A stretch of 64,000 nt of DNA from Blastocladiella emersonii ATCC 22665 (lineage: Eukaryota; Fungi; Blastocladiomycota). Location: positions 1,240,001-1,304,000 of the forward strand of contig JANHCV010000004.1 of NCBI GenBank assembly GCA_025594325.1. The letters run 5' to 3'. Below the pieces are notes generated by a model that was given only the letters and a program-made list of their open reading frames with translations, ran no database searches and was not told the origin of the DNA. Numbering within the stretch: position 1 is the stretch's first letter; the number at the start of each line of letters is the position of its first letter. The translations under genes and the position numbers were made by a program. Shown here piece by piece: positions 1 through 23,235 of the stretch.

Positions 1-2752
1 CGCGCGGACGGGAGCTACACGGCACGAGTCAGCACCAAACCAACCCGCCAAGTCCCGCACCAAAACATACCAAACCGGTACATGAGCGCGAGCGTCGCCA
101 TCGCCGTCCCCGCGACCGCCGACTTGAGCGCGTGGTGCCGGTCGACCACGAGCCCCGCCTCACCCGCGCTGCCGCCTCGCCACTCGCGGTCAGGCTTGAG
201 CGCCATATTGTCGTCGAGCATCGGCAGCATCACGAGGTCGCACAGCGCGTCGGCGAAGATGACCAGGATATCGTCGTGCCGCTCGAGCGCCGTGTCGAGC
301 AGGTCCGGGAACATGGCGAGCACCTGGACCGTGCGCAGCGCGCCGTCGACGCGGTCCCACGCGTTGGCCACCAGGATCGCGCTCGCGGTCTCGGCCAGCC
401 CGGCGTTGCTCGTCACGCCCGCGGCGATCAGCGCATCGTCGCCATCGGCGGGGGATACGGGTGACCCGGCGGGTGCCGCCGACATGGGCGGCGACGCGAG
501 GTCCGCGGCCTCGTCGCGCCGCGCGCGGTGGACGGACGAGACGGGTGAGCCGACTACGTCGTCGCTGCCCTCAACAAACGTCGCGTCGCCTCCGTCCTCC
601 TCATCCTCCGACACGGGGCTCGGGAACACCATCGCCGCGCCGCCGCCCTTGGTCGGCGACCCGGGCGACGCGAGGTCGCCCGAGCTCCCGCGGTTCGACC
701 GCGTGAGGAGAACCTGCATGAGCTTGTGCGCCTGCTCGATGACCACGCCGAGGACGTACGGCTGAACGATCTGGTCAGCGAACCACGCGAGGATCGTGGC
801 GTGGTCGACCTCGGTGACGCCGAACGCGTCGCGGTCCGCGGGCGCGAGCGGGTGGTCGACGGGGACGCGTGTGAGCATGCACGCGAGTTTCGCACACATG
901 ATTTCGGCGGCGGGTTTTTCGGACGCCAGGAGGACCGTCGCGATGGCGTCGTCGGCGCTGCGGTCCACTAACCCGGCGAGGAGCGGCGCGGGCGCGAGGA
1001 CCGCGAGGTTGAACATGGCGGCGAGCGCGCCGACGACCACGTCGTGTTCCGGGTGGTGGAGCAGGCGGACGACGGCGGCCAGCACGTCGCCGTTCGCCGG
1101 GACCGCGGGCGCCAGGAGCGCGGCGGGCGTGACGGCGGGCGACCCGCACAGGCAGTTGAGCACGTCGACGACGTACAGCGGGACGAGGGTGCGTGTGCTG
1201 GATCCGAGGTCGAGCAGGATGCGCAGGTTGCGGTGGTCGAGGATCGCGCGCGCGGCGCCGGGGACGGGGGCGAGGTCGTGCAGCAGCGTGAGCGCCCAGT
1301 ACTGGGCGTCCTCGTCGTTGGTCGCCCCGAGACACGCCATGACGCGCGGGACCGCGCCGAGGTCGGCGAGCCGCGGGTGGAAGTCGGGCTCGCGGATCCC
1401 GAGGAACTTGGCCACACGCAGCGCGATCTTGCCCGTGCCCACGTCCTCGGGCGCTATCAGCTGCACCACGCTGCGCAGCAGCGACGTGTTGGCGCGGACC
1501 GGCGCGCGGAACGCGTCCTTGACCGCGCACTCGTGCAGAAGGCCGAGCGCCCAGTACACAAGCTCGACGTCCTCCTGCTTGAGCGCCGACGCGATGAGAC
1601 CGACCAGGTTCACGTCTGCGAGCCCGAGGAGCGCGGTCTGCGCGTCGGCCGCGTCGAGCGCGCCCACGATGCGCACGAGCGAGTGGAAGCACAGCTTCTG
1701 CAGGGTCCAGTTGCCGTATACGACGCGCAGGCAGGCGCCGAACACGTTGACGAAGCCCGACTCGGCCATGATGCGCTGCAGGACCTCTACGCGTCGAGGG
1801 GTGGATTAGACGCGACGAAGAAGAGAGGGTGAGGGGGCATACCAGTCATGGCGAGGTTGTGCAGCATCAGGATGGACCAGTTGACGAGGTCGCGGTTGGC
1901 GCTGTGCGCGGCGCGCTTGAGGCTGTCGAGCAGGCCGTGCTTTTGGACCAGGCGTAGCTTGATGACATCTACGCTCGGGAGTGTAAGCGTGGCCTTCAGT
2001 CGCGTTCCAAGTAGCGTACCCTCGGTGCACACGAGCTCGAACAGCGTAATGACCGCCTGCTTGAGCGTGGCGGGGTGGGTCGACTCGGCGAGGATCCGGC
2101 AGCACAGCTCGGGCAGCTCCGCGGCCACAAACTTGGCGCGGCGGTCGTCGACCTTGGCGAGGTGCTGCAGCACGGTGATGGCGCGCAGGCGCTGGTCGAC
2201 GTCGGCCGACTGCCGCGCGGCGTCGAAGATGAAGCCGAGGTGCGGCTCCTGCGTCGCGCGGTCGAGGAGGATCCGGGTCGCACTAGGCCGCGCGATCGGG
2301 AGGGCGTGCGCGTCAGTTGGGTGGTCGGTCGGTCGCGGCAGGGGGAGGGGGAGGGCAAGTCGGAGGTGGCGTACCTCGCGCGGAGCAGGATCGACGTGGT
2401 CTTGGTCAGCTCGGCCAGCGATTCGAGCGGGATGACTAGAGTTGTGAGTGTGTGTTAGGTCCGAGTTGGGTGCCTCATGCACCAAGGGGAATGTAGTACG
2501 CTTCTCGAGCTGACGCGGGTTGCGGATGATCCCCGAGGCCGCGCCGACCGGGTCGAGGACGACGGTGTCCGGCTGCTGCTTCTTCTGCGCCGCGTCGTCG
2601 GCAGCTGTCCTTGGCCTACCGGGCGTGCGCTGTTGCAGCTGTCGCGCGTCGAGGCGGCGCGTCGAGTAGGCCATGAGGGCGCCCGTGACGGCGCACAGGA
2701 TCAGGAGCGGGATCGACGGGCCGGCGGCCTCCGACTCGAGGAGTTGATCCAT
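1..2752 (-). CDS. Armadillo/HEAT-repeat protein with an N-terminal hydrophobic anchor; multi-exon, 3' end runs off the left edge
   Basis: ORFs 1787..2752 and 15..1769 join through GTAC/GTATG..AG introns. Helical Leu/Ala-rich repeats (QYWALTLLHDLA, VYWALGLLHECA, VNWSILMLHNLA) and an N-terminal segment IPLLILCAVTGALMAY. A donor GTATGT near 68 shows the gene continues outside the window. Confidence 0.7.
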
Positions 2753-5011: not shown

Positions 5012-6211
5012 TCACTCGCGCTTGAGCTTGCGGGCCATGGCGATGGTGGCGCGGCCGGCCTTGTGGGCGTCGTAGGTGCGGCCGAGGCGCGACTGCGGGC
5101 CAATGTCGTCGCGCATGATGAAGTCGTAGATGACCTTGCACCAGGACGTGTGGTACGGGATCGTGTCGTAGATCTCGGGCATCCGGGCGCGCAGGAGCGG
5201 CAAACGCGACCAGGGTATGTTCATATGGTCATGATGCTCAGCGTGCATCCCGATGTTGAGCATGAATCCGTTGCCGGAGCCGTAGTACGAGTACGTCTCT
5301 TGACCGTCCTCGAACGTGTAGTGCTCCTGGATGAAGTGCGCGGCGAACGGGTGCAGGCCGTAGCCGAACCAGAGCGACAGGAACAGGTAGAAGAGGCCGC
5401 GCGGGCCGCAGAAGTGGAAGACGGCGAGGTCGGTCGAGATGGTCCAGGCCCAGTTGATGATCTCCCACTTCTGCGGGGTCTTGAGCATGGCGGCGCCGCG
5501 CGCCACGTACAGGACGGGGAAGCAGAAGACCCACAGCGCCTTGAGGAACTTGTTGCCGCGGATCAGCTTGAGCTCGATGTCGAGCGGCAGGTCCGGGTCC
5601 ATGCCGAAGACGCCCTGGTGGCTGTGGTGCATGAGGTGGTAGCGTCGAAATGAAGATGCAATAGGAAAGACGAGGCCGACGTTGGCGACGAGCCCGAGGA
5701 CGCGGTTGAGGAACGCGGACTTGAAGGCGAGGTTGTGCGAGCACTCGTGGATCAGGACGCCGAACAGGGCCGTGATGGACCCGCCGACGACGTAGGCGCA
5801 CAGCACGAACAGCGGCCACGACACGTCGCGGAAGTAGCCGTCCTTGGCGCCGAACGCGTACGCGAGCGCGACCTGCACGGCGACGGCGGCGACTGTGATG
5901 TACTTGGTCCGCCACTCGGGCCCGCACAGCGACTTGATGTCCGGGTGCTTGTCGAGGATGTGCAGGGCGCGCTTGCGGTGCGGCTCGTCGAGGTCGTCCT
6001 CGGCCACGCCGTCGTGCACGTAGGGGATCGACTTGGTCCACTCGCCGAGGTACGTCGGGTGGCGCACGTCGTACATGGGCGTGTCCGACACCTCGGCCAT
6101 GGCCACGCCCTCGTCGGTCGTGCCCGACTCGAACATGCGCAGCGTGCGGCCCAGCGAGTCGGGCTTGGGCGGCTGCGGCAGCCGGCCCGTTGTTGTTGGC
6201 GATGCGGTCAT
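5012..6211 (-). CDS. DES1: Sphingolipid delta-4 desaturase (DES1/DEGS family)
   Basis: N-terminal EPHRKRALHILDKHPDIKSL motif; His boxes HECSH, HLMHH, HAEHH; DPDLP and GLHPFAAHFIQEHY. The start at 6211 (MTASP) is a guess within the ORF that opens at 6451. Confidence 0.93.
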   Translation of the reverse strand: MTASPTTTGRLPQPPKPDSLGRTLRMFESGTTDEGVAMAEVSDTPMYDVRHPTYLGEWTKSIPYVHDGVAEDDLDEPHRKRALHILDKHPDIKSLCGPEWRTKYITVAAVAVQVALAYAFGAKDGYFRDVSWPLFVLCAYVVGGSITALFGVLIHECSHNLAFKSAFLNRVLGLVANVGLVFPIASSFRRYHLMHHSHQGVFGMDPDLPLDIELKLIRGNKFLKALWVFCFPVLYVARGAAMLKTPQKWEIINWAWTISTDLAVFHFCGPRGLFYLFLSLWFGYGLHPFAAHFIQEHYTFEDGQETYSYYGSGNGFMLNIGMHAEHHDHMNIPWSRLPLLRARMPEIYDTIPYHTSWCKVIYDFIMRDDIGPQSRLGRTYDAHKAGRATIAMARKLKRE

Positions 6212-17648: not shown

Positions 17649-18714
17649 TCTGTTTGTTCCCCCCGACATCAACTCATTCCCGCCGGCCTACGCCACCCTT
17701 ACCCGATCGACTCGGCCTCGGGTTCAGGCTCAAGGGGCGGGAGGCAGCGTAGAGTGCGCGTGGGAGGCACAGACAGGCAGGTTGCGCCTCAGGGCAGTTG
17801 GGCGCGCCCGGTGGCCAGCCCCCCTCGCCTTCGCTGCACCCTCTGTTCCGTTCCGACCTTCTCCATCTCTCGATCCCTGAAGCCCTCGTACATGCTGCAG
17901 CGCCCGCGGCTTGCGTGGAGTTCCCATGCCCGCTGCATTCTGCCCGCCTCGTGGCTCGCCCCGCGCTCGCGCGTCGATCCTCATCCTCGACATCAAAGGG
18001 CACTCGCGTGCGAGCCTCCGCGAGCTTGACCGTGAGTCGACTTCGACGAGAAGCAAGGGAGGACGCAGCGGCCTTCTATCCGTGGCCCGCAACGGCTCTC
18101 AGCAGCGGCCGCCGTTGCTATCGTCGTCGTGACGGACAAGGGCCGTGGCCGTGGCCGCGGCCACGGTTCGTTTGCTTGCAAATCGCTCACGCGGGAGACG
18201 CTCCGGCCGGCCGGTGCGCTGTGCTGCGGTCCGCTGCGGTTGATCCACTGGCGGGCGTGTTGCGCCTCTCCGCTGCGCGGCCGCGTAGAGTGGCGCAGCG
18301 CGTTGCCACGCCCTCGCTCGCGCCCGACCGCAAATCAGGGGTTCAATCAAGTCGCGAGTCCCCGGGGACGCTGATTTGGATCGATGGTGAGAGAAAGCAC
18401 ACAAGTCCCTCAAGCGACCAGCGAAAGAAATGCGTCGGCAGCTCGTCGTGAAGGAGGTCACGACCACCGAGCGGTGTCCAAAGTGGAGTTCATGGGCAGG
18501 AGGCAACCAGGACCAGTACCTTCGTGCCCCGGACGCGTTGCATGGGGTTATGCTGCTGTGCATGGTCGAGGAGATGAGAAGGGGGAGCAGACGCGGAGTG
18601 GGATCTGTGCCACGGTCAGCTGATGCAGCGCTTCGGCCAAAATGTAGGGTGAGTTTCCGATCCCTCCTCCCCCGAGATCAACGAAGCTAGATGCAGCGCC
18701 CATGCTAGAAACCA

Positions 18715-21700
18715 ATGGAACCTGATGCAATGAGTTATGCCTTAATGGATCCGGCGACGCCGCTTGTCCCGCCGACCGCGTCGTATATCTTGGACCGCGC
18801 CGTGCCGACCGCCGATCGCGACGCCTTGGCCCGCCGTGTTCGAGAGCGCAAGCTTCCCGGCAATGCCGCTTTCAACAGCTGGGTCCGAGGCCGCGACGCC
18901 GTTATGCGCCGGCTTGCGGCCGAGGCGGAGCTTGCTGTCCAACGTGGCGATTTGGAGGCCGCCGCGCGTCTTGCTACGGATCGCGCCAATGTTCAAGCTG
19001 AGATCGACGTGTGGACTGCCGTTCGTGAGGAGCTTTGCGTACGTTATTGGCCCTTTCTGTGCTCCATTCTCGCCAAACCTCACCGACCGATGAGTTACAC
19101 TATAGACATCCAATCGGCCTCGTGAGCCTGCTTCTGCTCCCATCTCGTTTGACCTCAAGGGTCCGGCTTTTACACCGCCTGCTGACGCCATCGTCGACAC
19201 GCCGGAGCTGCTCGGTCAGTGGGAAACCATGAAGCCGCGAAACTTGCCTAACCTGGGTCCCGTCCCCGCCGACGCCCTCGACCCGGAGGGCTTGCAGCCG
19301 CGCGATGTCACGCTCCCCGACGCCGACGCGTTGCGCTACTGCGCCGACCTGACCCTCGCCGTGCGCACCTTCTCGCCCGACGAGTTCTTCGCCGAACAGA
19401 TTTCGATGCTTCTCCCCATCGGCGACGGAAGCGACGAGTTCGAGGAGCTGGTATTCACCCACGACGAGGTCATGGTTGTCCTTGGCGATGCCTGTCGCTT
19501 CAACGACAAGCTTCTCGCTAACGCCGTCAAGCTGCTCGACATTTGCGCGGAGATTTCCCTGCGCGAACGAGTCGACTTTGACGTGTCGCCCGAGATCGTC
19601 GAGACTATGCTCGCGTGTCTCACCGACGACGACTACATCGACGGCCGCATCGCGGTCTCGTGCGAAGATTTTTCTCAACTCGACGGAGCTGTCAAGACCT
19701 ACTATGCCAAGTACGGTTCCGATGGCTGTCTGCCGCTCCCGACGGGCTACTCGCGCACTCTCCGCGACCTCGCTTACATCTTTCTGGCCAATATCCTCCG
19801 CAGCCTCTTCCAACACGTCAAGAACCAAATGTCGCATGTACTTATCGCCATTTACACGCGGTTTCTGGAAGCGGTCGCGGCTGAACCCGCCTACCAGCGG
19901 TCGAGTTTGCCGCTGGAGCCGTTGGCCTTGCAACGAGCAATCACGCATCTCCGCTACCTTACTGCCGATCATCCCCGGCTCTTCCCTCCTTCCCAGGGGC
20001 GCGCGTGGCTCCGGTGCCGCGGCTTATGGGATACGAATGACGCTCTGGGCGACAGCGACGCAGCGGTCGCGCCTTTGTGCAACGTCAGCAGCGCCATGAC
20101 GCTCGAGGAATCCATCATGGTCAACGCGCTCGACCTCGATCCTGATGACCAGCGTCTTTTTGAGCTCCGCCCGCTCATCACGTTGCTTGACCGTCTTCGC
20201 GATGCTTCCAAGTGGCTCGTTTCGGAGCGATGGGTCGAGCCGGACTTTACTGTGCCCACTTCGTTCGCCGACTTCTTCCCCAAGTCTACGCACCACGGCT
20301 TTACGGTAGCCGCCGTCTATGAGCTGCTTTCCGGGACCGCTGCTCCAGACGAAACCGCCCCTCCTCACCCGATCCCGCTCACCGATGCCACTCAACAAAA
20401 GTTCGACACGGGCATCGCTCCGCCGAAGGTTTACCAAAAGGTCGCCGCCCGACTCGCCCGTCGCGCGACCGCGGCCAAGGCGCAATGGGACGAAATCTTT
20501 CTTGATGCCGAGGGGATCGTGTCGCCTTCCGTTTTGTGGAAGTGGGACGGCAGTCATCTCCACAACCACTTTTACGGCTACTTTGCGACTGATGGGAGCA
20601 GTATCCATGCGCTTTTTGTCGAGGCCGGGATGCGGCCCCACGGCCCCGCTCGCGACGACGCCAAACTTGCTCGCGTCGTCAGCGATTGGGTCGGCGCGGC
20701 AGACTCGGACGGCTACGCGGGTCGTCTTGCCGCAATTGGCGGCCATCTTCCAGCCGTCTCGCAGCCGCGCTTCCGCGGCAAGGGCTTCCAGGACCCCGAC
20801 TCGCGCGACGTGCACGCCGGCCGTATCCTTCTGCCCGCCAACTGGAACGTCGTGGTGATGCTACCAGGCCACACCCAGCTCACGGCGCGCGTCGTGTCGG
20901 CCGGGCTCATCGCTGAGCTGCAGCGACTCGTGCGCGCGTATCGCAGCGACCTGCCCGCGCGCGTGCATCACACCTACGATATCAGCAACGACTTTGAAGT
21001 CTCGCTTAACCGGCTGAGCAAGGTTGCTCGGGACGCCGCAGCGCTTATCAACGCGCACGGCGTGCTTGCTGCGAAGCTCGGCGGCGCGCAGGCCGGGTTC
21101 GACTTTGTCATGGGCAAGGTCCGCGCGCATGTCGAGCAGGCGCGCGCCAAGGCGACGGCCGACTTCAAGGACCAGTTCATTGCGCGCGAACTCGAGCACA
21201 CGCTGATCAACGCGCTTGCGATTGCGGCGGGCTCGCCGGCCACGGTGAATATCGCTTTTCCCGCTGGATTTGCGCCGCTTCACGACGTCATTGCCTTGGC
21301 CGATGCAGCTCGGGCCGCGGGCACGCCTTTGAAACTGGAGCTCTCATACGACGATCGCCTTGACGACGCCGACGACAACGACGATCCGTTCGTCGAGCTG
21401 ACCCCCGCGGCTGCGGGCGCCCTCATTGCTCGCAAGGCGATCAGCTGCGTGGTCGTATCGAACATGCATTTTGCGCAGCGCAAGACGCATCGAGCTGCCG
21501 ACGACCTGCTCGCCAAGTTCACGGGCGACGCGGCCGCGGTCGCGGAGCTCGAGCGGTGGCTTCGTCTTCTCGCGCTGCAGCACGTGACGACGGGCGCGCA
21601 CAGCCTCGCGCAGCACCCGATCAACGCGTTCTATGACCCGACGACGCTCGTCAACAAGCCCGCCGCGCTCGCGCAGCTCACGGACGCGTGCCGCGGCGCT

Positions 21701-22033
21701 GTGGTCCTCATGGGCGATCGGGAGCAGTTTGCGGGCTCTCGCGTGCACGCGGTCGCCAAGGGCGTCACGGCGCACCTGCGCGCCGGCGGCGTGCACACGC
21801 ACCTCGTCAACGAGGAGTACGCGGCCAGGTGGTGCGCGGTCTGCGTTGCGCTCAACCCGACGGCCGCGCCCAAGGGCGAATGCGACCTCGTCGTGTTGCC
21901 TGATCGCGACACTGTGCGGTGCCCGAGGTGCCATCTCGACGTCGGCCGCGACGTGAACGTGGTGCTCAACCTCCTCATGTCCTCGCTGGACCAGTTTGTG
22001 ATCGTTCCCGCGCAGCCCGAGTTTGCGCTGTAG
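18715..22033 (+). CDS. Fanzor1/TnpB-family RNA-guided nuclease homolog, two exons (18715-19038, 19106-22033), about 1083 aa, RuvC-I apparently degenerate
   Basis: The 934-aa ORF contains HFYGYFATDGSSIHALF (WED), NVVVMLPGHTQLTARV (RuvC-I-like), AVVLMGD, LVNEEYAARWCAVC, RCPRC and GRDVNVVLNLL. Intron 19039-19105 (GTACGT..CTCAC..TAG) joins the 18715 ORF in frame through 41 stop-free codons to ATG 19229. Confidence 0.85.
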
Positions 22034-22104
22034 CGGGCCTTGCTCCGGTTTTCGTTTGCTCATACATGGACGTTTTGTTCTTCTCGAATTCGCTTTTTGC
22101 TCGA

Positions 22105-22190
22105 GCGTGCGTCCTACGCGAGGGACGAGCCGCGAGACGCGTTGCGCCACACCGCGCGCGCGGCTTCGCACAATCACTCAATATTGTTCA
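22105..22190 (+). ncRNA. Candidate omega-RNA (scaffold plus guide) of the Fanzor-like gene
   Basis: Hairpin CGTCC/GGACG (22110-22127) and stem AGCCGCG/CGCGGCT (22128-22165), followed by CGCAC (22167-22171), which can pair with GTGCG (22107-22111) or TGCG (22143-22146). An abrupt switch to AT-rich sequence follows. It starts about 70 nt after the stop codon. Confidence 0.5.
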
Positions 22191-22755
22191 CTTTTCATTG
22201 AAAGTCATGAACGTCGCCGAATTCGCTGAGCTTGGTAAGGATGGGCTCTGCTCGTCAATAGCGATCCAAGGCCACGAGGGGCTCGTATGTTGGACCTGCG
22301 GTACCAAATGCACGCCGCGGTGATGCTAGCGATGATCGTCCGCGTCCTCGTTTGTAAGCATGAATTGCCTTGGCACTTAACAATTTCCTTATAATGCTGA
22401 TGTTTTTTTAGAGCCCCCTAAGGTCCACGAGAGAAAGCTTTGGATACGGTTGATGAGGGGTTGGTTGAGGATTCGGCCGACGAGGATGAGCTTGACGCTC
22501 CACGCCAGATCAACCTGCGACGGACCACCACCACTGAACGCGGCTCAGTGCGACATGAGTGAGGGCAAGCTGCTTGGCAGTCGCGGCCACGGCCACGCGT
22601 TCTTCATACGCGGCCCGCAGGTCGGCGAGTTGCAGGTGGATATCCGCTCCGCACTCAAACAGAAGTTCCCAAGACTTGAGTTGGTCTCGCTGAAATCAGA
22701 CGTGGCGCCGCTGATTTGCGGCACGGGCACGCGGAACGCTGTCAATCTTGCTCGT

Positions 22756-22833
22756 GGCCGCCGTCAAGGCGATGGCCATGGCCACGACCACGACCATGGC
22801 CGCCGTCAAGGCGATGGCCATGGCCACGACCAT
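22756..22833 (+). repeat. Imperfect tandem duplication (42 + 36 nt) built from GGCCAT/GACCAC-type hexamers
   Basis: GGCCGCCGTCAAGGCGATGGCCATGGCCACGACCA occurs twice, adjacent. Confidence 0.9.
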
Positions 22834-23235
22834 GGTCGTAGCCAAGCACATGGTCGGTTGCAACCACGCACTCTGATGCTGTTCTCAGCTATAAAACAAC
22901 TTAACTGCTGAGGCAAAATTTAGGAACAACTGAAACACAATTCAACGACGACCTTTCGGTGGATTATCGCAGTAGATGGCGACAATGATCGATGACCATT
23001 GCCAACCGGTTTGAGGAGCTCGCTCAAGCGGACCAGGTTTTGAGGCACAGGGAAAAATCAGATTATGCTGACAGGATGATTCGCTCGAAAACAGGAAGGT
23101 AGAAACGATGGGGAGCAAAACGATCAAACACTAACGAGGGGGAAACGGATATCTTGAGGCCAGCCGTTCTTGACGAGTTGCCGTGTCGCGCGTCGCCGTG
23201 TTGCGGCCAGCCGTTTCTCGCGCTCGACAATCGAC

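Follow-up and report, generated by a model that had tools for sequence, protein, structure and literature searches.

Can a Fanzor, the eukaryotic type of TnpB, be kept as a protein after its RuvC nuclease site has lost the first catalytic residue? The question is raised by H9P43_004178, an annotated gene of the blastocladiomycete Blastocladiella emersonii ATCC 22665 (assembly GCA_025594325.1), whose 934-codon open reading frame (ORF) carries a Leu where related proteins have the RuvC-I Asp. Coordinates are positions in the window, the 64,000-nucleotide (nt) stretch of contig JANHCV010000004.1 that was analysed; residues are numbered along the ORF starting at 19229, P0001–P0013 denote the proteins of our family search, and L002, L003 and L005 are fetched paralogue loci. 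Bacterial TnpB nucleases have repeatedly been turned into nuclease-dead RNA-guided regulators (TldR, Cas12c/m/k), and Wiegand et al., in their work on TldR, explicitly expected equivalents among Fanzors; we found no described case of a natural nuclease-dead Fanzor in the literature. We give an even chance to the explanation that H9P43_004178 encodes a divergent Fanzor whose canonical cleavage was lost some time ago and which was kept as a protein, which would make it a candidate natural "dead" Fanzor.

Family membership and the catalytic site

phmmer, run exhaustively against 1.8 billion representatives, recovered 13 proteins; nine of them, not counting P0007, P0010 and P0013, were looked up, and all nine belong to the B. 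emersonii genome. The closest relative, P0002 (H9P43_004223), lies ~100 kb away on the same contig and is 40–43% identical across residues 314–934, and the remaining paralogues are 20–30% identical. When the family alignment was used for a word-indexed homologue search, only H9P43_004178 itself and P0002 came back. The Pfam family TNB (PF07282, Cas12f1-like zinc ribbon) was detected in 12/12 aligned members (best E = 8.7e-12); in H9P43_004178 alone it was placed at residues 851–914, with E = 6e-4 in one scan and 3e-4 in another, under the gathering score. Against solved structures, the single sequence of H9P43_004178 gave no meaningful match, and the family profile matched LaTranC (2.5e-7), ISDra2 TnpB (5.7e-5) and the Spizellomyces Fanzor1, SpuFz1 (0.008). 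Language-model neighbours of H9P43_004178 were TNB/DUF8286 proteins of giant viruses. An AlphaFold2 (AF2) model of the core (residues 379–934) reached an overall predicted local distance difference test (pLDDT) of 53, with values of 70–85 in the RuvC strands and zinc ribbon. Its top Foldseek match was SpuFz, and in VIA-align the core superposed on PpFz, SpuFz, CasPhi, Cas12 and TnpB RuvC with Z-scores of 9–10.7. H9P43_004178 has the TnpB-type three-part RuvC followed by a C-terminal zinc ribbon, in a eukaryotic genome. Its paralogues share DPG at RuvC-I, a Gly at the canonical RuvC-II place, a shifted Glu and RDxNAA at RuvC-III. In Fanzors, the RuvC-II Glu is displaced C-terminally by ~36–45 residues, to ~six residues ahead of the zinc finger, and the canonical place has an inert residue, Gly or Pro (PMC10530073; PMC13565253). 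An earlier note, made from the letters of the window, had placed the protein in the Fanzor/TnpB family, and the domain, profile and fold matches bear this out. H9P43_004178 is a single-copy divergent Fanzor, probably Fanzor1-like, that descends from Fanzor nucleases and fails one defining feature, the RuvC-I Asp.

The D-P-G that carries this Asp reads L-P-G in H9P43_004178, and D-P-G or D-x-G in the paralogues. The Leu545 column is Asp in 8/8 paralogues covering RuvC-I (alignments A1 and A4); it ends a hydrophobic strand and stands 16–17 residues past a common H-x-G-x-I motif. P0002 has A-I-I-G-D-P-G opposite V-V-V-M-L-P-G, with flanks that align unambiguously. Residues 540–546 form a strand in the AF2 core model (model residues 162–168, pLDDT 74–79), and a second strand and a long helix come after it. 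A 51-column RuvC-I sub-profile searched against the Protein Data Bank gave only chance matches to ketol-acid reductoisomerase; residue equivalence is therefore not demonstrable from sequence alone. VIA-align placed model residues 158..547 on ISDra2 TnpB 182..378, whose triad we take to be D191/E278/D361, and 147..547 on SpuFz1 362..623. By range arithmetic, which assumes ungapped ends, Leu545 (model residue 167) falls on TnpB 191 and SpuFz1 382–383, and Asp908 (model residue 530) on TnpB 361 and SpuFz1 D606. The catalytic triad of SpuFz1 is D383/E541/D606 (PMC11423790). As aligned and modelled, Leu545 occupies the position of the RuvC-I catalytic Asp. The earlier note had put the missing Asp at this codon (20861–20863) and proposed a structure model as a check, and the range arithmetic on the model led to the same residue.

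Codon 545 is CTA, the only CTA among the 108 Leu codons of the ORF, and differs at all three positions from both GAT and GAC. That it arose in assembly or sequencing, or as a mutation specific to the sequenced culture, is very improbable. All sequence data do come from one sample, but independently assembled Logan contigs from its three sequencing runs were identical to the window at every base across 19000–22400, with zero variant letters, and the neighbouring motif changes point in the same direction. Because these contigs agree with the window, the Leu codon is not an error of the deposited assembly. The distance of CTA from either Asp codon also speaks against a sequencing slip, as the earlier note had argued. 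A single contig per run spans the locus, which together with the three-run identity indicates that the sequence is sound and the gene single-copy.

At the other catalytic motifs, the reading made from the letters was largely accurate. Glu862, the RuvC-III Asp908 (invariant in the family), all four zinc-binding Cys and a frame without internal stop are intact; A-A follows Glu862 where 11/11 paralogues have [ST]-S, and V-V ends a RuvC-III motif that reads R-D-x-N-A-[ASC] in the paralogues. The Glu was rightly called present and wrongly called canonical. Gly829 occupies the canonical RuvC-II place in a strand whose paralogue counterpart reads A-V-V-L-I-G, and since the family has Gly there and its Glu lies six residues ahead of the zinc finger (six residues separate E862 from C869), E862 is the C-terminally shifted Fanzor Glu.

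The neighbourhood of Gly829 also harbors the best candidates for an improbable alternative, a rewired site in which another carboxylate replaces the RuvC-I Asp and DNA is still cleaved. D830 and E832, directly after Gly829, are unique to H9P43_004178 among 12 paralogues (alignment A1); the first place is otherwise taken by H, R, S, G or C, and the second mostly by aromatic residues. In the RNase H fold, the strand of the canonical RuvC-II Glu adjoins the RuvC-I strand, and the AF2 strand ends at model residue 452, which is D830. Plasticity of the RuvC site within the superfamily would favor such a shift, as seen in the displaced Glu of Fanzors and the Asn that is the third residue of GtFz1. 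To our knowledge, however, there is no precedent for a move of the first Asp, the residue that bridges both metals, and with [ST]-S and A-A lost beside the other catalytic residues, the pocket looks relaxed rather than tuned. Rewiring through D522, D524 or D527 of the segment upstream of RuvC-I is less likely. The suggestion that D522 supplies the Asp of a shifted site was rejected, because P0002, whose own D-P-G is intact, has the Q-D-P-x-S-R-D segment as well, and because this segment aligns upstream of H-x-G-x-I, with D522 (residue 144 of the model) no later than the point where the superposed core begins. Exact matches of 14 and 16 nt to the P0002 locus fall within this segment.

In the explanation that we favor, replacement of the RuvC-I Asp by Leu545, accompanied by changes in the pairs beside the other two catalytic residues (S-S to A-A and A-A to V-V), most likely leaves H9P43_004178 incapable of cutting DNA by the usual two-metal RuvC mechanism, because a Leu side chain binds no metal. 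An Asp-to-Ala substitution at RuvC-I abolishes cleavage by a Fanzor (ApmFNuc D324A; PMC10530073). The most likely activity of H9P43_004178 would be to bind a 3'-encoded guide RNA, and to bind DNA without cutting it. The protein could then act as a regulator, or compete with active paralogues; one of these, P0002, has the same 3' motif.

Retention or decay of the protein

We compared losses at conserved columns, defined as those on which 70% or more of the other family members agree. Inside the three catalytic motifs, 6/15 such columns were lost, as against 11% pooled in paralogues (p = 0.004, in a post hoc test run after the earlier note had pointed to those motifs); the deviations are D to L, Y-S-S-K to Y-A-A-R, A-A to V-V and N-I to N-L. 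Outside these motifs, the losses amounted to 12/48 columns as against 31% pooled in paralogues (p = 0.85). An excess inside and none outside indicates that erosion is confined to the catalytic pocket. A relative-rate count with the family consensus as outgroup gave 19 changes unique to H9P43_004178 and 12 unique to P0002 (p = 0.28). The step from Asp to CTA takes three substitutions and the two neighbouring pairs need four more; seven substitutions' worth of change in 15 nucleotides implies long relaxed constraint on these residues.

In simulated neutral drift (with a GC-rich target and indels excluded), an ORF with 0.05 substitutions per site stayed stop-free with a probability of no more than 0.15, and one with 0.1 substitutions per site with no more than 0.03; frameshifting indels would be expected to lower these values further. 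Coding periodicity is kept, with G+C of 0.69/0.45/0.79 by codon position. The zinc ribbon, shifted Glu, RuvC-III Asp and WED-like motifs are kept as well as in the intact-triad paralogues. Together with the 934-codon frame, these kept features point to catalysis having been lost some time ago in a protein under selection, and we consider it probable that the protein outlived its catalytic Asp in this way.

The ratio of nonsynonymous to synonymous substitution rates (dN/dS) depended on region and method. With the NG86 method, comparison with P0002 gave 0.69 overall (0.6–0.7); WED/RuvC-I had the lowest ratio, 0.40, against 0.84 for the C-terminal catalytic part and ~0.9–1.0 for the common insertion; the YN00 method gave 0.16 on conserved blocks. 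The NG86 values are inflated because strong codon bias deflates dS (four-fold-site estimate ~0.88). Selection on the protein, as inferred in the earlier note, has indirect support, in that the remainder looks maintained outside the catalytic motifs; the high pairwise NG86 ratio counts against it.

Several observations count against a dead but retained Fanzor. Besides the high NG86 ratios, overall and in the catalytic part, and the post hoc nature of the motif test, G+C at third codon positions (GC3) is 0.79 in H9P43_004178, below P0002 (0.86), P0009 (0.90) and host genes (0.84–0.96). None of the listed sequencing runs is an RNA run, and the phmmer search of protein collections found no orthologue in another organism. 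Residue equivalence at RuvC-I derives from range arithmetic and paralogue alignment, not from coordinates, with an AF2 model of pLDDT 53. Fanzor triads also tolerate some change, as GtFz1 functions with Asn as its third residue. As for a guide RNA, the 3' flank gave no structural signal (minimum free energy z = +1.37; RNAalifold covariation 0.01 on three sequences) and no match in an Rfam search.

Much of this is also what a decaying relic would leave behind, that is, a Fanzor copy in an immobilised carrier element that lost its Asp by ordinary decay and whose frame is still open as too little time has passed, in a high-G+C sequence in which stops are rare. Dead copies of transposon genes are common. 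We regard this explanation as unlikely, though a serious contender. It would account for pairwise dN/dS of 0.6–0.8 against P0002, for a GC3 under that of paralogues and host genes in a gene that lies in a lower-GC island, for what may be a degenerate copy of the 3' motif, terminal and in inverted orientation, and for the lack of a listed RNA run. Antisense frames at the locus reach 260–290 codons by chance, and the open frame is compatible with ~0.02–0.05 neutral substitutions per site. Timing is the difficulty for a relic. After a short neutral period, at 0.05 substitutions per site, ~0.75 changes would be expected in the 15 nucleotides, against the three plus four required; after a long one, the frame would have broken, the more so with indels. 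Neither the conserved columns outside the catalytic motifs, eroded no more than in intact paralogues, nor the rate of change, which shows no excess over P0002, fits general decay.

A divergent Fanzor kept as a protein could have a more specific role. It might be a eukaryotic TldR counterpart, kept by its fungal host or by the transposon family as a programmable RNA-guided DNA binder, with a fused helical N-terminal domain and a guide-scaffold end common to the intact paralogue that it possibly regulates or competes with. This extension is tentative, and we hold it doubtful in this form.

Gene model, 3' motif and surrounding sequence

The features of the locus are collected in Table 1. H9P43_004178 lies between a C2H2 zinc-finger gene on one side and an amino-acid permease gene on the other, with no transposase between these flanking host genes, in a stretch whose G+C is somewhat below that of its surroundings. 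Public annotation treats an in-frame segment of the gene as an intron. We take this segment as coding because the 53 residues that it encodes align with both halves of P0003; the product is probably 934 amino acids long, not 881.

Table 1. Features of the H9P43_004178 locus, in window coordinates
Feature	Position	Strand	Basis
Weak candidate for a degenerate inverted copy of the 3' motif, with 3 mismatches, ~0.9 kb ahead of the ORF	18288..18304	-	3-mismatch matches expected by chance ~1.3 times per window
Fanzor-family ORF, 934 codons, with N-terminal accessory domain	19229..22033	+	ORF list; annotated gene H9P43_004178 (product P0001)
N-terminal accessory domain, residues ~95–370, predicted helical	19511..20338	+	phmmer stretch 90–246; tblastn to L003; alignment A5
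159-nt in-frame GT..AG segment, intron in public annotation, probably coding	19838..19996	+	P0001 lacks residues 204–256; these align to P0003
Q-D-P-D-S-R-D-V-H-A-G segment with D522 (20792–20794), conserved linker ahead of RuvC-I	20789..20821	+	common to P0002
RuvC-I strand N-V-V-V-M-L-P-G, Leu545 (CTA, 20861–20863) for the catalytic Asp	20846..20869	+	alignments; AF2 strand; range arithmetic
Long, mostly helical insertion between RuvC-I and RuvC-II, weakly constrained	20900..21690	+	alignment A1, columns ~470–735; low pLDDT
Strand A-V-V-L-M-G-D-R-E, Gly829 at the canonical RuvC-II Glu place, typical of Fanzors	21698..21724	+	alignment A1; AF2 strand 446–452
Shifted RuvC-II Glu862, then E-Y-A-A-R-W-C869	21812..21835	+	family alignment
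Zinc ribbon (TNB), C869/C872/C898/C901 all present	21833..21931	+	PF07282 at residues 851–914; invariant alignment columns
RuvC-III R-D-V-N-V-V, Asp908 kept	21947..21964	+	alignment; range arithmetic
17-nt non-coding motif, 103 nt past the stop; candidate omega-RNA scaffold end or carrier-element end	22136..22152	+	exact matches at P0002

The N-terminal domain is 25–29% identical to each half of P0003 (H9P43_008122), and P0002 retains only its last part. Its AF2 model was unusable (pLDDT 38) and its language-model neighbours were weak. P0003 itself (L003 5001–7077) consists of two tandem copies of this domain with acidic low-complexity linkers between them, and has no nuclease core. The insertion between RuvC-I and RuvC-II is common to H9P43_004178 and P0002 only. 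At the P0002 locus, a continuous 737-codon frame (L002 6472–8685) contrasts with the annotated 622-amino-acid spliced product, which starts at 6001; the 5' end of the P0002 gene model is probably incorrect.

The 17-nt motif downstream of H9P43_004178 has two exact copies past the P0002 stop, at 111 and 277 nt (L002 8796–8812 and 8962–8979). A shorter conserved stretch precedes it, and similarity between the two loci stops right after it. In length, the motif equals the longest exact matches in both coding regions, against a synonymous divergence of ~0.9 per site. On several other contigs of the B. emersonii genome, short matches end at 22152/22153. The omega RNA of Fanzors is transcribed from the 3' end of the gene and has a terminal guide of 14–20 nt. 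The motif is where the scaffold of such an RNA, or a carrier element, would be expected to end, with the guide predicted to start after it. In the wider genome, a ~20-nt form (22131–22153; core G-A-C-G-C-G-T-T-G-C-G-C-C-A-C-A-C) recurs on other contigs, always with the same end base, and on one contig it stands as an inverted pair ~560 nt apart that resembles the ends of a small non-autonomous transposon. A second contig search, made with the 86 nt that surround the motif, brought up none of the other contigs that carry it, and a motif scan of a prokaryotic contig collection gave zero matches, which is uninformative here. No shared 3' motif was found among the four other fetched paralogue loci, the 20 nt following the motif had no second match within the window, and inspection for terminal inverted repeats around H9P43_004178 gave nothing convincing. 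Among the fetched paralogue loci, only that of P0005 has a transposase-like neighbour, a gene with a weak match to Plavaka (a CACTA/EnSpm-like transposase; L005 301–1527) 2.5 kb upstream.

The frame of H9P43_004178 is open already from 19106, ahead of the first ATG at 19229, and a separate 136-codon ORF lies in another frame just upstream (18715–19125). Between the Fanzor and permease genes is an unannotated 153-codon ORF (22450–22911), in which 42-nt tandem repeats (22755–22838) encode a His/Gly/Asp-rich stretch; the repeats gave weak, sub-threshold matches to microRNA precursors on the minus strand.

Comparison with known RNA-guided systems

Among known systems, Fanzor1 proteins (SpuFz1, PpFz1 and GtFz1) share most with H9P43_004178 in architecture: a eukaryotic host (fungal in this case), a RuvC core fold (Z 9.8–10.3 to SpuFz and PpFz), x-P-G at RuvC-I, Gly at canonical RuvC-II, a Glu six residues before a four-Cys zinc ribbon, and R-D-x-N. 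Large size with an N-terminal extension is also common to both, the RuvC insertion is reminiscent of the FRI insertion of PpFz1, and a conserved non-coding element lies ~100 nt past the stop. H9P43_004178 differs from them in its Leu for the RuvC-I Asp (D383 in SpuFz1), in A-A and V-V beside the Glu and third Asp, and in sequence, in which the family profile matches solved Fanzors only marginally (E = 0.008). It is also single-copy, without a transposase or clear terminal repeats, and its omega RNA is a candidate only. The paralogue P0002 has the same helical insertion, Q-D-P-x-S-R-D segment and 17-nt 3' motif; unlike H9P43_004178, it keeps D-P-G and S-S, lacks most of the N-terminal domain and has two copies of the 3' motif.

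In function, the nearest analogues would be bacterial TldR and the non-cleaving Cas12c, Cas12m and Cas12k. TldRs, nuclease-dead TnpB-like repressors of bacteria and phages, resemble H9P43_004178 in a broken RuvC triad with an otherwise preserved frame and, in its case, a non-mobile-looking context among housekeeping genes. By contrast, H9P43_004178 is eukaryotic and has lost only one triad residue, without C-terminal truncation; a guide, a target promoter and a repressor role are hypothetical for it. Cas12c, Cas12m and Cas12k use the RuvC/zinc-ribbon scaffold for RNA-guided binding without double-strand cleavage (PMC13565253), and Cas12m structures were among the fold matches of our core model; unlike H9P43_004178, these proteins are prokaryotic and guided by CRISPR arrays, and their functions have been shown experimentally.

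Set beside these systems, H9P43_004178 is a good candidate for, and not a demonstrated case of, a nuclease-dead Fanzor. It is a concrete one, with a defined substitution at residue 545, an intact-triad paralogue as a built-in control, and a short conserved 3' element that marks the expected start of the guide. Should the protein prove to be expressed and to bind DNA, it would show that a eukaryote has RNA-guided gene regulation derived from a transposon; otherwise, it would be an instructive case of a Fanzor whose catalytic pocket decays first.

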